Under the pieces are notes generated by a model. The model was not told the DNA's origin. It saw nothing but the letters and a program-made list of their open reading frames with translations, and did no database searches. From assembly GCA_013416795.1 (NCBI GenBank), contig RQSC01000015.1:489541-546894 (forward strand): a DNA stretch of 57,354 bases, in the 5' to 3' direction. The first letter of the stretch is position 1, and each line of letters opens with the position of its first letter. Shown here one piece after another: positions 1 through 57,354 of this stretch. The translations under genes were made by a program, and so were the position numbers. Source of the stretch: Prasinococcaceae sp. CCMP 1430 (lineage: Eukaryota; Plantae; Prasinodermophyta).

Positions 1-74
1 GGGCGGCGCGCTGGCGCGACGGTGGCGCCACAGTGGGCCCCTGCGAGCGGATGTTGGCGTGATCCGCGCGAGAG

Positions 75-1668
75 ATGTGCGCCTCCAAGTCGGCGCTGCG
101 GCGCACGCGCGCGGGCGCGCGGCGCGAGGCTGGCGCGGGAGGGGCAGCGCGAGCGGTGCCGCCTGCGCCGGTGACGGTCCCGCCGGACGAGGGCTGCGCG
201 TCTAACAGCGAGTCCGAGGCAGACACGGATGCGCGCGTGGGCTCCCGTTCGAGCTCGCCGAAGCACGACAGCAAGCAAGCGACCGGCATTTTGAAAGTAA
301 TCGTTGCGCCGCACGCCCGCTCGCACGGACAAAAGCTTGCAAAACAGGTGATCGCGGCGGCCGTGGAGCTCGCTTCCGCGGCGTCCATGGTCGCCGCGGG
401 CAGGGCGGCAGCGGCGTGCGTGAGCTTGGCCTCCTTGCACGCGGGCCTCTCAGAGTCGACGACGGGCGTCGCCTTCGCGTGCGCGTGGGCGGCGGCGTAC
501 GCGCGCATGCTGGCGGGCGCGGCGTACATGTCCGTGCAGGCCAGCCGTGGGCGCATGCTGCCCCGCCGAGAGCAGCTGTCGTGGTGGGAGTGCGCCGCGC
601 TGCTTGTGCGCGGTGCGGTCGTTCTGTCGCCCGCCGATGCCACCGTCGCGCTGCTGGCGTCGCGTGGTGCGCGAGCTGCGGGCAGCGCTCCGCTGGCGTT
701 GCCTGATGTTGGCTTTGGCGTCTTGGACGCGGCGCTGGCGCTGCTGGCGTACTGTTTGTGGTTCGTGGTGACCAACTTCGTGCTGGAGGCGGCCTTCGAC
801 TTCGCGCACTACTGGCTGCATCGCACGATGCACATGTCGCCCGTGCTGTACAGGCATCTACACGCTCGGCACCACCTGCACACGCGGCCAGTGGCGCTCT
901 GCTTGCTTGAGCAGTCGTACCCTCTCATGACCGACCGCTCGTGGCACAACGGCACGCGTAAGCGGGTCCACCAGCGCGCCATGCACGCGTCTGGCTGGCT
1001 CTCTGCGCGCCCACCGTTCTTGGCGCTTGCTTGCTGCACCCATGGCAGCGCGACGTACGAACAAGTCAACAGGCCCTCACGTGTCCCGACTGCGGGTTTC
1101 TAACCTGCGCATGCGTGTGCGCTCGCGTGTCGTCCTCCGTAGTCGCGTCTTTCGTCTTCCCGCCTTTTCTGTGCTCGAGTCGGAGCTGATGTTGTCGCAG
1201 AAGCTGATCATCGAGTTCGCTGGGCACTGCGGTTCTGACACGACCTGGAGCTCGTTCCCGACGTTCATGTGGCTCCCGCGGATGCTTGGATGCGGTGCGT
1301 GAGGGGGGTGGCCGAGGTTGCGGGCCCGAAAGCGGGCGCGTATGCTTATTGTCTCACTAGCGGACTTAGCCTTACCTGTCGCGACCGCCGTTTGTTGGAA
1401 CGTATCGCTGCCCTTGCGGCTGCGTGTGCTGACCGGTTCTTTCCTCAAACCATGCCCTCATGGGCTACCCTCCTCCTACTTCATCGCACGCCCCTCTTGT
1501 GCGAATGCAGAGCTGTACGTGTGCGACCACGACCTGCACCACTCCGCTGTGCGCTGCAACTACGGCAAGCGGTTGTCGGTGTGGGACAAGGCCTTCGGCA
1601 CCTACCGGCGCTCGTGGGGGACGGCCGCGCACGGCGAGGCGCCAGCGAACGCGACGCCCGCGCGCTGA
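75..1668 (+). CDS. Sterol desaturase / fatty acid hydroxylase superfamily protein, copy A (3 exons; end of exon 1 garbled in this sequence)
   Basis: His boxes HYWLH, HARHH, EFAGHCG and HDLHH. Exon 2 is 1143-1294 and exon 3 is 1511-1668, with AG/GT boundaries matching copy B. Positions 917-989 are the unreversed complement of copy B 8323-8395, which destroys 21 codons and the true donor (expected at 980). Confidence 0.85.
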
Positions 1669-1881
1669 TGTCGTGTGCCGCGGGAAGGGGCAGGAAGGGG
1701 GAAAGGGGGAAGGGGCGGGGAGGGGCGAGCCTTGGCCAGAGTCAGGAGCAGCGCGGCACAGCAGTCTGCCTGCGCGCCATTGTGTGAGTTTCCCAACTTG
1801 AAGTGCCTGCACGTTGCATGCAGCACACCACCGACGGCACACATGCCATTAAAAAAGACGCACGCAGCCAGCACGACCTGA

Positions 1882-1979
1882 CGATGCGGTTTGACGTACA
1901 CAAAAGTCTCCCGTGGGTTACTTGCGTAACGCACGTCAAACCGCATCGGAACGACCCGCGCATGAGTCTCCCGTGGGTT
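1882..1979. repeat. 16-bp perfect inverted repeat with 35-nt spacer, plus a 15-bp direct repeat
   Basis: cgatgcggtttgacgt (1882-1897) pairs with acgtcaaaccgcatcg (1933-1948). agtctcccgtgggtt occurs at 1905-1919 and 1965-1979. Confidence 0.85.
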
Positions 1980-2222
1980 TTTTCTGCCCGCAGCAGGTGG
2001 AGCACATCGCCGGGGCTAAATAACGCAATTGAAATGTGCGTCCTTGAGATGATATCTGATTAATTCACGTAATTACCAGGGCGAAATTTGTGCGCGATCG
2101 GGTGGCTCTCGGCGCGCGCGCGGCGCGCGCCCGCGACGAGCGGATCGGACTTGCGGCCGAGCGCCGGATTCCGTCCGGCGCGAAACCGCCGCGGATGCGA
2201 ATCGGAGGTTAAAAGCGCGGAT

Positions 2223-46371: not shown

Positions 46372-46514
46372 ATGACGCAGGCGTGTGGTTCGTGCGGGCA
46401 CCTAACAGATGTGAGACTCTCCCGTGGGTGTTCGTTGCGCATGCGTTGTGACCTGCGTACTTTCAAACTGAAGGTGTGCTTGGAGAGAGGGCGGCTGGTG
46501 CCACACAGCGCACC

Positions 46515-46552
<38 letters not shown>

Positions 46553-49500
46553 TGGGCAGCGCGCTGGAGGCTGGTGACCTTTCTGCCGCGCAGGCGGACG
46601 GCGCGGAGGCCGGGGGGGCGTCCGGGGCCGTCGTTGTGGCGGCGGGCTCGGACGCGGGCCCTGCGGCGTTCATGGCGCAGCTTGCGGCGTACGAGGAGCG
46701 CGCGAGGGCGGCAGAGGCGCGTGAGCGCGTGGCGAAGAACCGCGAGGCGGCGGCCGAGGCGCTCGCCCGGGAGGCCGAGGCGCGCGCGGCGCGCGCTGAG
46801 AGTGCGCTCGCCGAGGCCGACGCGTGCGCTGCGAACGCGCTCGCAGAGGCAAATGCGCGCGCGGCGCACGCAGACAAGGAGGTCGAGGTGCTCGAGGTTC
46901 GCTTGAAAGAGGAGTACGCCGCGCGCATCCAGGGCGCGGCCAACGCTGCCACCCTCGCCACGCGGCTTTCGAACGAGGCCGCCGAGCACCGGGTCGAACG
47001 CGAGAAGTGGATGGCGAAGTACGAGGCCATGGACAAGAACTTCGAGCGCGAGCGCGCGCACCTCGTGGCCAACATCGAGCAGTTGAAGACCGAGCGCGAG
47101 CACGAGAGGACCGAATTCGACTCGCGTTACAAGCAAATGGAGCTTCTGACGGCGAGGGTGACGGAGTCGATCGAGCCTCACGCCGATGCGGCGCACGCGG
47201 GCGCGCCTGGGGGCGCGCCGGCAGTGCCGCACAGCCAGGAGCCGAAAGAGCTCCTGGCCGATGCGCACGACAAACAGGGCGGTCCGCAGAAGCCCGAGTC
47301 GCCCCCGCCTCAGCAGCAGCCGGCCACGTGGCCCCCGGTCCCGCCGCTAGACAAGGGCGAGGACGCTCAGGTGTCATTCGGGGCAGGGACCTGCCCAGAT
47401 GACAACGACAACAACAGCAGTGGCACAGCGCGCGTGACTCTCGAGAAAGCCATTGAGGTCCAACAGCCTCGGCGCGGCGCGACGGAGGCCGAAGGCGCAG
47501 GCCCAGCATCGCAACTTGCAGGGGCGGACGGCGGCGACGACGGTGAGGTGGTCGCGTTTCTTTGGAAGCGCACGGCCAATGGCGGCTTTGCGCTCGGCCC
47601 AGCCTCAAGTGATCTGTGTGTTGACGAGGCGTTGCAAGCCCGAAAGGAAGGGCGCTGGGATGAGCTCAAGGAGCTGCAGCGCAACATGAAGGCAGGTTTC
47701 TTGGGTTACATGAACGACATCGTTGCATTGCGACACCAAGCAAAAGCGGTAGCCGATGCGGCAGCTGCACTCGCGCATACGTACACATATGACGATGGCA
47801 ACCCGGGCGCATCGCCCGACTACGACTCTGACAACGACTTTGCTATGGTCGACGCCGCACCTGACGCTGCACTGGATGGTGCCGACGTCGATGAGGATGA
47901 CGACGACATTGCTTTTGAGGTGTTTGCTGGCGATGCCGATGATGGTACAAGTGAGGAACGGCGTGATGAGGTGGACTCCGGTGCGGGCGACAACAGCGAG
48001 GATGACGACGATGCAATGAGCGATGACGGCGCCACCATGGAGGACAACAGCACTCTGCCGCACGCGGCACCTTCCCTCGCGCGTGCAGCCGGTGGGATGG
48101 ACTCGGCCGACACGCACCGCAACGCACAGAAGAGGCCAGCCGGCGACGTTCTTGCTCCGCCAGGTGGACACAAGGCCTCCAAGCAGGCCCGTCGTCGTGT
48201 CACCCCCAAGGCATTGAGCGCCGCCGATGTGCGCAGCTTGGAGGCGGAACTCGAGCAGAGGCGCGAGGCTGCCGAACGCGCGAATCCCAACATTGCGGGG
48301 ATGCGTGGCGGCGGCGGGATGGGTCCGCTGGAGACGCTCATCGGCACCCTCGAGACCCCGGGCTCGGCGCTTGCGAGGGATGTGGTGGAGGCGCAGCGAA
48401 AGAAGATCGAAGCGCAATGGGAGGCCACCGAGAGGCCTCAACTGGACAAGACGCGCGCTGTGATCTGGAAGGAGGTGACTTCGAGCAGCGCTGTTGATCT
48501 CGCGCAGGAGCTGGCGAGTTTCCGCGCGCGGCTTGCCAAGCTCACCCAGAGCCTAGTCGAGAGCTTCGAGGACGAGTGCGGGAGAGGTGTCCCCCCGGAG
48601 GACGCAGCGCGTCGATGCAGTGCGATGAAATTCACTGTTGCGTCCATCTGCCGACTGAAGTATCTACAGTCCCTGGCAGGCATGTCGGAGGCGCCTGACG
48701 ATGTGCGCGCGGAGGATCAGAGTGGCGATGGGGAAGCCCAGCGGCCTGCTGAACCTGTGAGTCGCAAGCACAGCGGCCGGGGCAACATTGCCCGCGACGT
48801 CGGCAGTACGGTGACGCTCGTCGATCTCATCAAGGCTGGCTTGGTAGAGGCCGGGAACAACGCTCTCGTGCTGCGCCTCAAACAGCAGGAGTTCGTGGCC
48901 GACCTGGACAAAGACGGGACAATCCGTTTCGAGGGGTGCGCCTTCAACTCGCTCAACGCTTTCGGCTCGCACGTTGCGAAGCTCTTTTCTGACAAGCTGA
49001 CCGTCAGTGCCTGGTTCGCGACACGACATCAGGGCAAGAAGATGTCTGAGTACAAGGCGACGTACAAGCAGCAGGTGCGCGAGGATATGGCGGACTTCAT
49101 CGAGGACGACATGCCAGAGGACACGATCGCGCAAGAGCGGGAGAAGGAACAGGAGGCTCCACAGAGAGTCCACGGAGTTGCCAACGGCGAGACGATCAAT
49201 CTCCTCGCCACCGACTGCGATGACACAGCCGACGGGATTGCGCAGGACTCCGCGCCGGCTGCCAAGCGCACGAAGAGCAAAGTCCGCGCGACCAACACGC
49301 AAATCATTCATCCTGCCTCGACCTCGCCCAATCACAGCAAAACGTATGTTCTGTGCTCTTTGTCTGAGGGAGATGCCTGCGAAGTGAGCGCAGACACCGA
49401 ACAGCCGGGCTCGGGTGACGAGTTTTGGCTGCCTGCGACGTTCGTAAAGCCCCTGTCCAGCGACGGGCGGGGCAAGTATGCGAGCGCCCAGGTGAAGCTA

Positions 49501-52500
49501 TCGCAGGCTTCTTCGCCGATACACACAGCCTTGGTCAAAGTGCGCCCGGTGCCGCCGAGTGCCCCTGACGACGAGCTGAGAGGATTCCAGGACGTCACTG
49601 TGGGGGAGACCGTCGAGGTGAAGGTGGAGTCAAAGGGCGCCCCCGGTGGCATTTGGAAACGCCTCGTGGTCGCACGCCAGGCCACGGCGGGCGCGTGGTA
49701 TGACTGCGCCACGCTCGCCGAGATTGGATTGCAAATTGGCGGAAATATCGGCGACGCAAGCGTCGGGCAGAACGCGAGCGTCGACGCAGCCACTGACATG
49801 GATGCCTCGCCTGCGTGGGGGCGCGTTTTGTCCAGGTTGCGAGCGGCGAAAGGGAGGAGCGGCTTGGAGGCCTTTGATGCATTCATTTGCGCCCACGGGC
49901 GTGGTCTGAATGACGTGCCCCCGGGGCTGCGGCGCCTGGGTGCGCAGGTTGCAAATGCGACGGTAACGACGGCGGCGCCGCTGCTGCGGGACGGCGGCGA
50001 GCGCATGCCTCGCATCCGCAGAGCGGCCAACTGGGATCCCACAGGCCAAAAATGGACGCCCATTGCGGCGCTCCCCCCTCGGCGCTGCAGAAGACTGCTG
50101 AAGAATCTTGGTTCGCGGTCTGACGCGCGCGAGAGAAGCCGCGCGCTGGCCCGGTGCCACAGCCACGCATTCGCCGGCGCATCCGAAGATCGCGCGCTCG
50201 CATCGGCGAGGTTGCAGTTTGCAAAGAAGCTTGCGCGCACGCCCACGTACCGCTTCGACGACACAAAGCACGTTCTCAGGGTCTCAGATCCGAGCGACGC
50301 CGCCCAGCTTGCCACCGACAGCAACGGCAGGCCCGACCGAGAGTTCGTGTACGTTTCGAGCAAGGGCGGGCGGCGGCGAGGGGGATTTACGAAGTCGCCA
50401 TTGTCGCAGGTGCGCAGGGCCAAGAGCGCAGGCAAAGACAAGGGCAAGGGACGGGCTGTCCCGAGCCCGAGTGCTGCTGCTGCGCGGCGGCGCGCGCGCG
50501 ACAAGAAGAGCCAGAGGCGCCTCGCCGAGTCCACGCGGGAAATTCACACTGCGGGCGCGCCGTTGCCTGCAGGGGCAGATCTCGACGGTGCCGACAGCGG
50601 GGCGCATGTCCTGCGTGCGGGCATCCCGCAGGTGTGTGGCGGAAGAGACATCACGGTGCTGCCCTATTTGGCGAATCAGCTGAAGAATCATCAGTGGGAT
50701 GGCCTACGCTACGTGTGGGATGCCATCGTCAGCAGGCCTCGCATGGCGGAGCTGTCAGACTCAGACTCAGACGACGACGGCGACGATGATGACGATGGCG
50801 CCGGACGCGACGATGCGACGGGTGGGTGCATCCTGGGCCACTCGATGGGCCTTGGAAAGTCCTTGCAGGCGATCGCGCTCATGCACACGCTGCGCAAGTA
50901 CGAGCTGGCGACGCGTTTCCTTCTCGTAGTTCCTGCCAACGTCGTCTTCAATTGGGTGCACGAGCTTGGCAAGTGGCTGCCCAATGGTGAGAGCTTCGTG
51001 CTCTACAATTGCACTGTGTACACCCGCGATGATCGCGCGCGCGCCGTGGTGCGCTGGGCTCGAGACGGGGGGCTCCTGTTGATGACCTACCACAACTTCG
51101 CCGAGCTCGTGAGCGGTGCAGGTCGAATGCCTAGCCAGCATGACGACGTGTTTGCTGTGAAAGCCATGAAGGACGCAGCGAACAAGCTCAGCGAATGCAC
51201 GGACCTGGTTATCCTCGACGAGGGCCATGAGCTTCGCAACAGCAGCACGCAGAAAGCTGCTGCGTTCAGTTCGTTCCAGTGCCCCATGCGCGTCGTGCTG
51301 ACCGGCTACCCGTTGCAGAACAGCCTTGAGGAGTACTGGACCATGATGAACTTCGTGGCCCCGGGGTTTCTCGGCACGGAGGGCGAATTTCGGGAGGAGT
51401 TCGTGGTACCGATCAAGGAGGGCAACCAGGAAGGCGCGTCGTCGATCGATCGCAGGGTGATGAAGCGGCAGCTGCACGTCCTGCGAGGGTTGGTCGAGGA
51501 TCACTGCCACAGGCTCGGCGCCGACATCCTTCAGGCGGAGCTCGCGGCGCAGGGCGTCACGCTTCACGAGCACGTGCTGCGGGTGGCTATGGTCCCGTTC
51601 CAGGAGGCGCTCTATGCACGGTGGATCGACCTCGCAATTCGCGCGAACGTCGATAGCTTTGTCGTACAGTTCGCGGGCCGGCGCATTATGTGCCACCCAC
51701 ACCTCTTCAAGGTCATTGACATCGACGGCACGAAGAAGGAGGATGCCCCCATCTCAGTAGACGCACTGACGGATGCGTCAATTCGTGCCGTGGATGCCAT
51801 AGAGGCCGCACTTGTGCGGGCCCTCGACGGACGTGATTTCAGATCAGGCCCGTGGCCTCCTCCCTCGCAGCTCGGTGCCTTCGTCGCCACGGCGCTCGAC
51901 TCTGCGCCCGAGGCCGCGGCGGTGGCCGCCGGGCTCGCCAATCAACTCAAAGGTTATGGCGAGAACGGTAGGGATACGACACTCGCTGAACTCAATGCAG
52001 AGAAACGGCGGCTTGCTGTAGCTGGTGCAGTCTCGAGCATATGTACCCCGCAGCACATTGAAAGCCTTCACCGGTCCGCATGCAAGGGCGGGGTGAACGC
52101 TGTGATTGCGCGAAACGAGTCAATCGCCCTCGCCTTGGGCAAGGAATACGTGCCCCGCGTCATGGCAACGCGGGCGTGGCGTCTCGCCAAGGCCGACGCC
52201 ACTGACGGCGGAGCGAGCGAGCCTTCGGGGCGCGTGAGTGTGCCACCGGACCCCACGCACGCCGCGAAGCTGCGAGTCCTGCTCAGCATTGCGGACGCAG
52301 TACAACAGAAGGGGGAGAAATTGCTCGTGTTCACCGACTCGGTCGAATTCATCCACCAGGTCCTCGTGCCGGTTCTGCGCAAGCTCGGATGGCGCCAGAA
52401 CGCCGAGTACTTCCACATCGACGGCAGCGTCGTGCCGGCGAAGCGCCAGGACGCCGTGCGGCACTTCAACAAGTCAAAGCGTGCCAGGATGTTCATTCTC

Positions 52501-53193
52501 TCTACAAAGGCCGGCGCCCTGGGAATCAACCTCACGTCGGCCAACCACTGCGTGCTGTTCGATGAGATTTGGAACCCTTCCTGGCGCAACCAGGCGCTGC
52601 ACCGTTGCTTTCGCATGGGTCAGGAGAAGCCCGTGCACGTGTATCGACTGATCGGCAGCGGCACCTTCGAGGAGATGGTGTACAAGACGTCGCTGGAGAA
52701 GGAGCGCCTGTTCTGCAGCGTCGTCGACAGCCAGAACGTCGGCCTGGCCTCCCATCGCAACAAAAAGATGGCGTTCGAGCGCTACACGAAGCACTCCCCC
52801 GACCTCGACGGCATGACCGCCGTGGCGGACGGAGTGGGCACCTCTGGCGCGGGTGGGCGGGCAGCGGCGGAGCACAGCTCCGTGCTCCGCGACCTGGCTC
52901 GCGCCGGCGCGTCTCAGGCGCTGCCGCTGCTCTCGGTGTACTCGGCGCGCGACGACATGCCGCCAGAGCAGCAGCTCGACCGCGACGACCGCGTTGGCGC
53001 CCTACGCGACGCCGTCGGGCGCTTCAGCAGGATGACCGGCCGCAAGGCCACGGCCGCTGAAGCGGGCGGCGGCGGCGGTGCCGCCGGCGGCTCCGCCGCG
53101 GCGGCGCGCGCCGAGCGCCGCGTGACCCGCCAGCGGCAGCGCAAGCTCGACGAGCTGCTGCGCCGCGAGGAAAGGACCGGGGCGGAGGGCTGA
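46372..53193 (+). CDS. Large intronless SNF2-family ATPase (ATRX/ARIP4-like) with coiled coil, RAMA domain and Agenet/Tudor-like repeats; true ATG may be downstream (e.g. 46672)
   Basis: GGCILGHSMGLGKSLQ, VILDEGH, VVLTGYPLQN, EKLLVFTDS, FILSTKAGALGINLTSAN and QALHRCFRMGQEKPVHVYRL. RAMA-like segment at 48811-49070. Confidence 0.93.
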
Positions 53194-53584
53194 CCCAGGC
53201 GTGCGGCCTCCCTCGCGCCAGGATGTGATGTAAACCCTACAATGATATTTGTACCATAAACGTAACCCAAACCATCGAATTCGCGAGCGGAGGACTGCGC
53301 GCGCTGCGCACGGGACCACTCCGCGCGCCCTGGGCGCGCGGGGGGCGCCTGGTCGCGCCCCCCTCTCCCCCCTCTGCCTGGGCAGGACACGCGCACGCAC
53401 GCACGCGGGCGCGCCCGCGCGCACACACACACATACCCCCGTACGGGCGTGCGCGCGCGCGTACGCACGCCCTGCCGCGCCCCCCCGCACCCACGCGCTC
53501 TTTTTTGCGCACGCTCTCGCTGGCGTGGGAGCGGGGGGCAAGAGCGTGGGCGGGCGGCAGAGAGGGGGGAGGCGAGCGCAGCCG

Positions 53585-55215
53585 ATGGTGCGGACGCGCG
53601 GTTCGGAAGCGGCGGCGACGCCGTCGCCGCTGCGGCGGCTGAAGCGGACGGGGCGCGACCGCGCGGCCGAGGCGCACGCTCCGTGTGCTGCATGCCCGCG
53701 TTCCGCTGGCCAGCTTCGACGTGGACCTGCACGCTAGGCGCCCGGGGGGGCGGGAGTGCGCCGACACTGCGCGACGCGCTGCTGCGGCGGCAGGACGAGG
53801 TGCTGGGCGCGCGGCGGCGCGGCGGCGCGACCGCCGACGACGCCATCGAGCTGCTGGACGACGACGACGACGACGACGGAACCACGAGCGGGGACGAACT
53901 GCTCGACGACTTCGACCTCGGCGCCCGTGACCTCTTCGCGCCTGCGCGGAGGCGGGCCCCTGCGCCCCGGCGGCAGGAGGCGCGTGCGCGCACGCGGCGC
54001 GTGGTGCTCGATGACAGCGAAGCGAGCGAGGACGACGACCTCGCCGACTTTATTGCTAGCGATGGTGAGGAGCTCGAGGGGGAGGAGGTCGCGGCAGATG
54101 ACCTCGAGGACATGGAGGCCATCATCGCAAGCCAGCGCGAGCGCGAGGCCCTCGACCGCAGCGACGACGAGGGCGCGCGCGCGGAACGCGCGGAGCGGCG
54201 CGTGCGCGGCATGCCCGCGTGGGAGCGGAGGCTCAGCGAAGATGAGCGTGACTGGGTGACGGATTTCAAGGCCATGATGACGTTCCTGCTCATTGAGCTC
54301 GCGGGCGGCCGGGACAGTGTCCAAGAGATCAACGCGGACGGCGCGCAGCGAGCGCACTTTGCGGAGGCCTGTCGGCGGTGCGAGGACCGCTTGCAGGTGC
54401 GCGCGGCCAGCTCGTTGGCGAGCGGTGGCTGGCAGCCGCGCTTTTCCGATGCGCTGCACGCTTGCCCCGCGATCGGCGTGTGCGACCTCGAGGATTTCGA
54501 GGAATGCGGGTGCGAAGCGTGTGGCCGCTCAAATCACGTCGCCAGGGGGCGCATCACGCTGAGGCGGCGGGCGCCAGCGCCCGGGCTCGCGCCTTCGATG
54601 CGGCCCTACCGGTGTGTTGACGACCACGGTCGACTAGTGTACAAGCCTCGGGAAGTCGATGAGGATGAGGACGACGACGAGGATGACGACGAGGATCCCG
54701 GTCACGAGTACGACTTCGAGGCCGGTGAGGGCGGGCGCGCGCTGCTCAATGCGAGATTCGACATAGGGCGCTTCTGCAGGGCGCGAAGCGTGCTCTTTCA
54801 TGCCGCGCTACACTTCACACGGAACTGCCGTCGCGCGGCCGCACGGCGCCTGCTGCGGGAGGTCAGACTGGCCAAGGACACGAGGGCGCGTCAAGCTGGT
54901 GGGGAGGAGCCAGAGGTGAACGTCTCAGCCATCATCAATCGCATCATCGAGGAGACGAGCCTTGTGCAGGACTGTTGGCAGATGGCCAAGCGTATCATTT
55001 GGCTGGCAGACAGGTATCTGGAGGAGGGCTCTAGGAGGAGCTACAAGCCCGGCCAGGCCACGGGCATGGAGGCCGAAGAGTACGACCTGCTACAATTTCA
55101 AGGAAAGCTGGGTGAGAGCGATGACGACCTCGGGCTGGGATGCGACGAGGGGGGGGAACAGGAAAGCGAGGAGGAGGACGCCCCGCGGCGGCGGCCCTCC
55201 CGCACGCGCCGTTGA
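53585..55215 (+). CDS. DUF4211/CCDC82-like acidic protein, N-terminal part; start and 5' splicing uncertain
   Basis: DDDLADFIASD, CEACGRSNH and FDIGRFCRAR..LFHAALHF pattern. The main frame is that of the 53449 ORF; MVRTR at 53585 is a plausible start in another frame. Confidence 0.7.
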
Positions 55216-56340: not shown

Positions 56341-57354
56341 TCATTGCGTCATTTGCACTCGCTCGTCTCCCTCGCGCCGTCGCTGCACGAGCCTCCGTGC
56401 GGCCATTGCGACCGACGCCACAAGGAGCACGTGGGCGCCAAACGTCGGCGCGCGCACGCCCAGCCGCACTGGCGCGCGCGGCGCCCGCTCCTGCAGCGCG
56501 GCGGCCATCTGCGCGAGCGCGACGCGGCCTCTTGCGGCCCGCTGCGCGGTTGCGCCTGCCCCGTGGCGCACGCCGAGGCGCGCTCGACGGAGTGCGCGCT
56601 TTGAGGCGCGCGCGGCGCCCACGGTGCCCACGGTGCCCACCTCCTCCGCCGTTGTGCCCACGCCAAACAGCAGCGGCACGCAGCCGAGCACGCAGCCCGC
56701 CGAGATGCCCACGACCTGGCCGATCGTGTCCGCCGCTCGCGCAGCCGGCTGGGCCTCCTGCTGCAGCGAGAGCCCGGGATCGGGGAGCACGGCCTCGCTG
56801 ATGCGCTCCACCGTGCCGCTCGTGAGGCAGCCGACCACATCGGCCACTAGGTTGCCCGCCGCGGCGGCGGCCAGGCCATACAGGCCGAAGCGCGGCCCCA
56901 GCTGCGCCTCGATCGCCTCGCCTGCCAGCAGCATCACAAAATTGTCCGAAAAACCGAAGCCCACCATGGAGCCCGCGCCTAGCGCGGCGTGCATGACGAG
57001 CTGCGCCGCCGAAACCTCGGCGTTGGACGCGGCCTCCTGCGCTGCGCGGAAGGCCACCCACTCTTCGCGCGTGAGCACCCCATCGGCGTTGGCGTCGGCG
57101 GTCGTGAACTCCTCGTGGACGTGTGCGGGCGCGTCCCTCTTCTGCTCGCGGCCGTCCAGTGCGAGCCTCCGCCTCGCGAGCGCGCCGAGCACCACCTCGC
57201 GCTCGTCGTCGCCCAGCGCGGCGGCGAACGCATCGAGCGCTGCGGCGCGGCCGCCCACGCCGTCGCCGCCGCACCCTCGCGCGAGCGCGCGGCCGAGCAG
57301 CTCGGCGGCGTCCTCGCCCTGCCGCCTGCGCTCCGCCGCGCTCAGCGCGGCTTC
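56341..57354 (-). CDS. EF-hand plus TMEM65-family membrane protein, 5' end outside the window
   Basis: Canonical EF loop DANADGVLTREE (57096-57061), then MVGFGFSDNFVMLLAGEAIE..LAAAAAGNLVADVVG, matching the TMEM65 pattern. The C-terminal end is uncertain. Confidence 0.82.
   Translation of the reverse strand, partial: EAALSAAERRRQGEDAAELLGRALARGCGGDGVGGRAAALDAFAAALGDDEREVVLGALARRRLALDGREQKRDAPAHVHEEFTTADANADGVLTREEWVAFRAAQEAASNAEVSAAQLVMHAALGAGSMVGFGFSDNFVMLLAGEAIEAQLGPRFGLYGLAAAAAGNLVADVVGCLTSGTVERISEAVLPDPGLSLQQEAQPAARAADTIGQVVGISAGCVLGCVPLLFGVGTTAEEVGTVGTVGAARASKRALRRARLGVRHGAGATAQRAARGRVALAQMAAALQERAPRAPVRLGVRAPTFGAHVLLVASVAMAARRLVQRRREGDERVQMTQ

Follow-up and report, generated by a model that had tools for sequence, protein, structure and literature searches.

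The window analysed here, a 57,354-nucleotide stretch of contig RQSC01000015.1, carries on its forward strand an expressed nuclear gene from the early-branching marine green alga Prasinoderma coloniale (Prasinodermophyta). To judge by its sequence, the product of about 2200 amino acids is very probably a chromatin-remodelling enzyme in which two types of chromatin-binding module precede the motor. A DUF7607 domain, a RAMA domain, a predicted tandem Agenet-like region and an SNF2 ATPase follow one another in a single open reading frame (ORF; Table 1), whose protein-database twin is PRCOL_00006930-RA of P. coloniale (P0002) and of which a second database version (P0001) derives from a Logan contig. 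The guanine-plus-cytosine (G+C) content of the coding body is about 60-67%, and residues are numbered from the first codon of the maximal ORF (residue = (nucleotide - 46372)/3 + 1). Both database versions start with methionine at the codon that corresponds to 46591 (CAG in the window), and the next in-frame ATG of the window is at 46672; the position of the true start codon is uncertain, and the choice leaves the domains discussed unaffected. The run of 33 C upstream of the likely start is probably non-coding, as part of the 5' leader or promoter; a 98%-identical relative (L006) shows an alignment gap over 46549-46592 and has ATG in place of the CAG at 46591.

Alignment of public sequencing-run contigs to positions 47300-53250, in which the RNA label of the runs is the tool's guess, supports continuous transcription of this frame. 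One RNA-labelled run (X2) yields one contig of 5178 nt that matches 47864-53041 colinearly, with zero mismatches and zero gaps, two overlapping contigs of a second (X1) tile 47300-53024, and a seawater metatranscriptome contributes 95-99% identical pieces across the Agenet and ATPase parts. Across 47300-53041, the RNA-labelled contigs contain no splice or intron within DUF7607, RAMA, the Agenet region or the ATPase. The original prediction, made from the letters of the window, had assigned the modules to one gene product, and the single ORF and unspliced contigs bear this out, with no sign that they are spliced out or belong to a separate gene. Two apparent joints (47680>51034 and 48317>53093) were rejected as splicing, since their sides measure 21 nt and they also occur in a DNA run, which marks them as chance matches. 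The public gene model P0002 is without residues ~1207-1272 (window 49990-50187), presumably a predicted intron, and the missing part includes the closing strands of the second Agenet-like barrel. Because the RNA-labelled contigs are colinear through 49990-50187, this model apparently discards coding sequence.

Another sample yielded an independent 10.2-kb contig (L006, 98.4% identical) that is colinear through both the SNF2 gene and the next gene and retains, as P0001, every domain of the architecture. The SNF2 gene differs from its L006 counterpart by 34 synonymous and 37 non-synonymous codon changes, the latter lying mostly in disordered parts and linkers, and the fastest-changing stretch is the acidic tract after RAMA, within the linker bin of residues 904-989. 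The distribution of these differences, though the counts are small, points towards constraint on the folded modules (Table 1).

Table 1. Features of the gene in window coordinates, with synonymous/non-synonymous codon differences from L006 where counted (pLDDT, predicted local distance difference test)
Feature	Position	Strand	Residues	Differences from L006	Remarks
Maximal ORF	46372-53193	+			2273 codons; stop-free, intron-free coding body
Poly-C run, 33 C	46521-46553	+			poly-Pro if the maximal ORF is translated; just upstream of the likely start
N-terminal region				5/13	
DUF7607 (PF24580)	48379-48696	+	670-775		all-helical
Acidic tract upstream of RAMA	48682-48741	+	~771-790		aligns with MPND acidic region 1
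RAMA (PF18755)	48790-49080	+	807-903	2/1	
Acidic tract right after RAMA	49090-49161	+	~907-930		position of MPND acidic region 2
Linker bin			904-989	1/6	includes the acidic tract after RAMA
Agenet pair				2/0	
Agenet-like barrel 1	49351-49557	+	~994-1062		ends in V-R-P-V-P-P linker motif
Agenet-like barrel 2, first two strands	49558-49680	+	~1063-1103		
Insert within barrel 2	49681-50007	+	~1104-1212		~110 residues; low-confidence helices and disorder
Agenet-like barrel 2, closing strands	50008-50067	+	~1213-1232		R-I-R-R-A-A-N-W-D...W; pLDDT ~70
Conserved linear motif	50218-50265	+	1283-1298		F-x-K/R-K/R-L-A-R-x-P-T-x-x-Y/F-x-x-T
ATPase				12/7	
SNF2 lobe 1	50659-51630	+	~1430-1753		
Motif I	50848-50862	+	1493		GLGKS
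Motif II	51217-51228	+	1616		DEGH
Motif III	51301-51321	+	1644		TGYPLQN
Inter-lobe insertion	51631-52272	+			~215 residues; also in P0003
Helicase_C lobe 2	52273-52623	+	1968-2084		
Motif VI	52603-52623	+	2078-2084		RxxRxGQ
C-terminal tail	52624-53193	+			partly conserved with P0003; ends in a basic stretch and the stop codon

Motor, Agenet-like pair and algal relatives

Pfam recognizes both lobes of the motor (SNF2-rel_dom, PF00176, residues 1483-1753, E 7e-38; Helicase_C, PF00271, residues 1968-2083, E 3e-16), and judged by motifs I, II, III and VI the catalytic core is intact. Its best sequence match in the PDB is ATRX (9l06, 1e-71), with RAD54 at 1e-52 and ERCC6 at 1e-50. The GLGKS and DEGH motifs are present as originally described, and the TGYPLQN variant, which had been taken as ARIP4-type, is common to insect ARIP4 sequences together with HSMGLGK and EYW, whereas the compared ATRX sequences read TGTPLQN, HCMGLGK and EYH. 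The claim that the protein has no ADD domain also holds, as Pfam finds no match to PF17981 in the whole protein, while the animal ATRX matches do carry it. In a maximum-likelihood tree of 25 ATPase cores (midpoint-rooted, with several long branches flagged, and with RAD54 and plant ATRX left out), the algal proteins group with ATRX and ARIP4 in a clade that is separated from SWR1, CHD1 and bacterial SNF2 with support of 100/100. There the protein pairs with metagenomic P0003 (100/99), the two join the Trebouxia protein P0004 and P0009 in an algal group (94/90), and this group stands beside animal ATRX and ARIP4, branching outside both (93/91, midpoint root).

The protein accordingly resembles animal ATRX and ARIP4/RAD54L2 in its ATPase core, which lies in the same strongly supported clade, and ARIP4 in particular in the motif variants HSMGLGK, TGYPLQN and EYW. 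As in ATRX, the motor is preceded by an extended N-terminal region that includes a histone-tail reader, here a predicted one; unlike ATRX, the protein has tandem Agenet, RAMA and DUF7607 as its modules in place of ADD.

The original prediction had also called the segment at ~49370-50060 Agenet-like, and we find with moderate confidence that residues ~994-1230 would adopt a tandem Agenet-like fold. At the level of sequence, the algal relatives have in common the pattern G-x-x-x-E-V, W, V-R-P-x-P-P, G-x-x-V-E-V, W, R-x-A-x-x-W/F...W, in which W1019 is invariant across the family alignment and the closing strands (R-I-R-R-A-A-N-W-D...W) are conserved in all algal relatives; P0003, the closest homologue, shares the C-terminal half of the insert in barrel 2. 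Among the seven aligned algal relatives, two reach Pfam Agenet (best E 0.002), and a profile of the seven has a lone PDB match, the tandem Agenet of ADCP1 (6ie4), which at E 0.34 is non-significant and has its landmarks in register. A phmmer search with the P0009 Agenet pair against the PDB gave no match, and exhaustive HMMER of residues 985-1245 against 1.84 billion representatives returned only the protein itself and a spurious immunoglobulin-repeat protein (P0102), so that the Agenet region is without relatives detectable from a single sequence.

Structural comparison points the same way. We modelled residues 985-1300 with AlphaFold2 from a four-sequence alignment, and the top Foldseek matches of the model in the PDB are NtAGDP3 AGD1-2, AGDP3, AGDP1 and ADCP1 (E 8.4e-4 to 9e-3), followed by the UHRF1 tandem Tudor, FXR2/FMRP, SGF29 and Spindlin, with almost all of the top 50 being tandem Tudor-type. 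VIA-align gives Z scores of 9.1-10.0 over 111-129 residues against six tandem-Agenet entries and at most 7.8 against others, and in AlphaFold DB/Swiss-Prot the Agenet pairs of Arabidopsis DUF724 and AGDP1 rank first. The aligned model range, 2..249, skips model residues ~120-228, and the second barrel is therefore predicted to consist of residues ~1080-1099 and ~1215-1230 around an insert of ~110 residues, its last strands being formed by the distal motif that had originally been noted (RIRRAANWD...W). A single-sequence AlphaFold2 model of residues 657-1276 (mean pLDDT 40) was used for secondary structure only. In ADCP1 the methyl-lysine cage is formed by Y129, W134 and F151 of the second Agenet; a sequence-level comparison suggests W1095 as a plausible equivalent of W134, with W1109 and Y1110 nearby.

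The plant H3K9me2 (dimethylated lysine 9 of histone H3) readers AGDP1/ADCP1 and AGDP3 are thus the best structural matches to the modelled region, and they share with it the landmarks G-x-x-V-E-V, W and V-R-P-x-P-P. They differ from it in that identity is only 20-25% and the algal protein falls below Pfam Agenet, in the ~110-residue insert of its second barrel, and in that the algal module is fused to an enzyme, whereas the plant module is repeated as a scaffold.

Searches with the ATPase and with P0009 recovered a small green-algal set of proteins with DUF7607, the Agenet pair and SNF2, comprising P0004 from Trebouxia and P0009 with its kin (P0009 and P0003 are metagenomic). The members of a small green-algal clade have this plan of DUF7607, tandem Agenet and SNF2, without ADD, in common. 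The DUF7607 score of the present protein is borderline (28.6 bits against a cut-off of 27; 26.5 in near-identical P0001), and P0009 (45 bits) and P0004 (33 bits) have the domain at the corresponding position. Its helices appear in the single-sequence model with pLDDT up to 82, and a search for it by language-model features gave nothing usable. The F-x-K/R-K/R-L-A-R-x-P-T motif, which every algal relative examined carries after the Agenet pair and ahead of the ATPase, may act as a partner-binding peptide.

The relatives run from DUF7607 through a disordered linker to the Agenets, and in Prasinoderma RAMA lies inside that linker. Among the matches listed in these length-limited searches, no other protein combines RAMA with SNF2, and RAMA is in Prasinoderma only; a word-indexed search of residues 660-1300 returned only the protein's own two database versions. 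On the sequences compared, the predicted tandem Agenet is common to the RAMA-less algal relatives, and only the RAMA insertion is lineage-specific. P0004, P0009 and P0003 are therefore like the present protein in ATPase clade, tandem Agenet-like module and F-x-K-K-L-A-R-x-P-T motif, and P0004 and P0009 in DUF7607 too, and unlike it in that none has RAMA.

P0003 is 40-50% identical from residue 1149 onward and is encoded on a contig (L004) of 66% G+C, where a search of the larger plus-strand ORFs over the preceding 2.2 kb detected neither DUF7607 nor RAMA. An ORF with a SAP DNA-binding domain (L004:1054-1278, Pfam E 1e-14) precedes the P0003 SNF2 gene by about 1 kb, and a CysS_C-like helical hairpin (L004:2220-2350, 27.6 bits against a cut-off of 23) directly precedes the P0003 Agenet pair. 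P0003 apparently differs, then, in having SAP and this hairpin in place of DUF7607 and RAMA. The SAP ORF may be an upstream exon of the P0003 gene, with SAP in RAMA's place; if so, the sister proteins would have different DNA-binding modules before the same Agenet-SNF2 core, and such a swap, by analogy, fits RAMA as a generic DNA or nucleosome anchor. A metagenome scan with the ATPase alignment gave three distant SNF2 loci of 28-29% identity, which were uninformative.

RAMA and the proposed reading of N6-methyladenine

The original prediction placed a RAMA domain following the MPND pattern at 48811-49070, in agreement with the Pfam match at 48790-49080. PF18755 matches the whole protein with E 2.2e-15 and 56.9 bits (cut-off 35.2) over model positions 12-106 of 107, and the isolated segment with E 4.7e-17 and 62.3 bits; language-model features likewise put the segment among RAMA clusters (0.93; 210/256 shared). 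The nearest solved relative, and the sole phmmer match in the PDB, is the RAMA domain of human MPND (7ydt, E 1e-7, ~34% identity), in an alignment that extends into the flanking acidic tracts, and the layout of acidic tract, RAMA and acidic tract mirrors that of MPND. The MPND backbone contacts S113, S115 and W135 align with S860, N862 and W881, so that two of the three are identical and the third is changed from Ser to Asn. The resemblance to animal MPND, which joins RAMA to an MPN/JAB deubiquitinase, thus covers the MPND-type RAMA, the acidic tracts on both sides and the S113 and W135 equivalents; in contrast, Pfam finds no JAB/MPN match in the whole algal protein, whose effector is the SNF2 motor where that of MPND is a (pseudo)deubiquitinase.

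RAMA was defined, and predicted to discriminate modified adenine, from bacterial restriction-modification contexts, and its eukaryotic occurrences lie in lineages thought to have N6-methyladenine (6mA) (Iyer, Zhang and Aravind 2016; PMC4738411). The eukaryotic fusions listed there involve JAB, Dam, ankyrin, SET, PHD, Chromo, Tudor, Bromo, BRCT, ARID, MBD, PARP finger, AT-hook and RING; the combination of RAMA with Tudor-type readers is hence a known theme, whereas that of RAMA with a remodelling motor lies outside the list, and the word SNF2 is absent from the text of the paper. The RAMA-Agenet-SNF2 architecture is apparently undescribed, as the original prediction had supposed, and our literature search found no text pairing Prasinoderma with 6mA or with DUF7607.

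MPND is the only eukaryotic RAMA studied structurally (PMC9963953), and results on it conflict. In the structural study, crystallography, electrophoretic mobility shift assays (EMSA) and microscale thermophoresis (MST) showed that its RAMA binds double-stranded DNA (dsDNA) independently of sequence and length and that 6mA is without effect; the contacts are to the backbone only, mutating S113, S115 or W135 abolishes binding, and the RAMA of CcrM is likewise non-specific. The same domain binds H3/H4, and its acidic flanks enhance direct binding to H3/H4 and nucleosomes (PMC9963953). The identity of eukaryotic 6mA readers is still open (PMC12695648). In view of the MPND crystal study, RAMA as a 6mA reader is a contested prediction rather than an established fact.

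The writers of the mark point in the same direction. In the supplementary table 'MTA70distribution' of PMC12695648, P. coloniale scores 0 for AMT1, AMT6/7, AMT2/5, METTL4, METTL3 and METTL14, while Ostreococcus and Micromonas carry AMT1. Genomic 6mA in Chlamydomonas, which had been offered as support, belongs to another organism, and those data are non-transferable because the genome is that of Prasinoderma coloniale.

Proposed function and neighbouring genes

We consider it reasonably probable that the protein is an SNF2 remodeler of the ATRX/ARIP4 clade, with DUF7607, RAMA and tandem Agenet as predicted targeting modules ahead of the motor and with RAMA serving as an anchor that is not specific for 6mA. 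By analogy with the reading of H3K9me2 by AGDP1/ADCP1, the tandem Agenet would take the role that ADD has in ATRX and dock the enzyme on an H3 tail state. RAMA and its acidic flanks, as in MPND, would add sequence-independent contacts to dsDNA and to the nucleosome (H3/H4), and RAMA would here not be a 6mA-specific reader; the ATPase would then slide or exchange nucleosomes at the docked sites. Several observations weigh against this proposal. The protein itself is unmatched by Pfam Agenet (PF05641) at E up to 10, the Agenet model has a mean pLDDT of 48.8 (50-75 in its beta parts), and by eye no aromatic residue is evident at the position of ADCP1 Y129. The absence of RAMA elsewhere is drawn from a small number of sequences and from searches restricted by length and word. 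In a pull-down cited in PMC9963953, the MPND RAMA was reported to bind 6mA selectively (Kweon et al. 2019; PMC6591016), and the table in PMC12695648 covers MT-A70 classes only, with Dam-type adenine methylases outside it.

The last two points bear on the possibility that RAMA is a true reader of 6mA in DNA which, with histone-methyl reading by the Agenet pair, recruits the remodeler to 6mA-marked chromatin. We regard this as unlikely. The prediction of a modified-adenine sensor, the occurrence of RAMA in 6mA-associated eukaryotic lineages (PMC4738411), the cited pull-down and the good conservation of the domain here would all agree with it, and 6mA readers are an acknowledged open question (PMC12695648); yet P. 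coloniale scores 0 in all six MT-A70 classes, AMT1 included, neither the MPND measurements nor the CcrM RAMA show an effect or preference of this kind, the Chlamydomonas data come from another organism, and the closest homologue, P0003, is without RAMA. Of the original suggestion that one polypeptide could couple 6mA and histone-methyl reading to remodelling, the architecture in one polypeptide stands, and the link to 6mA is doubtful in view of the MT-A70 score and the MPND data, such that coupling of the remodeler to 6mA is unlikely on present evidence. That RAMA is a genuine modified-base reader, either of 6mA made by a non-MT-A70 (Dam-type) enzyme or of another modification, strikes us as quite improbable. 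If it were, the protein would be the first eukaryotic effector to turn an adenine-methylation signal directly into ATP-driven nucleosome remodelling, to which the tandem Agenet would add a histone-methylation input.

A different view would have RAMA as a recent lineage-specific insertion (through exon shuffling or transfer) that contributes little or nothing, the working protein being only the Agenet-SNF2 remodeler that other algae share. Its restriction to Prasinoderma among the relatives found, at a site that is a disordered linker in those relatives, fits this view; however, the RAMA score is far above the Pfam cut-off, the domain retains the DNA-contacting Ser and Trp as well as the MPND-like acidic flanks, and it shows 2 synonymous and 1 non-synonymous differences from L006 against 1 and 6 in the adjoining linker, though these counts are small. 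We hold this insertion without function to be rather unlikely. It is very improbable that the architecture is an assembly or annotation artefact fusing separate genes, for which one might cite the uncertain start codon and the P0002 gene model, which differs from the ORF in being without residues ~1207-1272: the ORF is continuous, independent DNA and RNA-labelled contigs are colinear with it, all joint sides measure 21 nt or less, and the independent 10.2-kb contig from the other sample carries the same ORF.

Eukaryotes have few candidate readers of adenine-methylated DNA, of which RAMA is one, and its fusion to a remodelling motor and a predicted histone-reader pair offers a 'Rosetta stone' clue to RAMA action at the level of the nucleosome. 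The domain set is also compact, and lends itself to comparing 6mA DNA, plain DNA, nucleosomes and histone peptides. With the remodeler reading that we favour, the green-algal branch of ATRX/ARIP4 would use a tandem Agenet where animal ATRX uses ADD, and, by analogy with the plant readers, this swap is possibly a case of convergent targeting to H3K9-methylated chromatin. The weight of the case is limited to one species and a near-identical relative, in a species seemingly without known eukaryotic 6mA writers.

Two further genes lie downstream in the window. The next gene on the same strand (53449-55215, +) codes for a highly acidic product that contains a DUF4211 domain (E 1.5e-12), and an ORF on the opposite strand (56341-57258, -) has a TMEM65 domain (E 2e-29) together with a weak EF-hand match.

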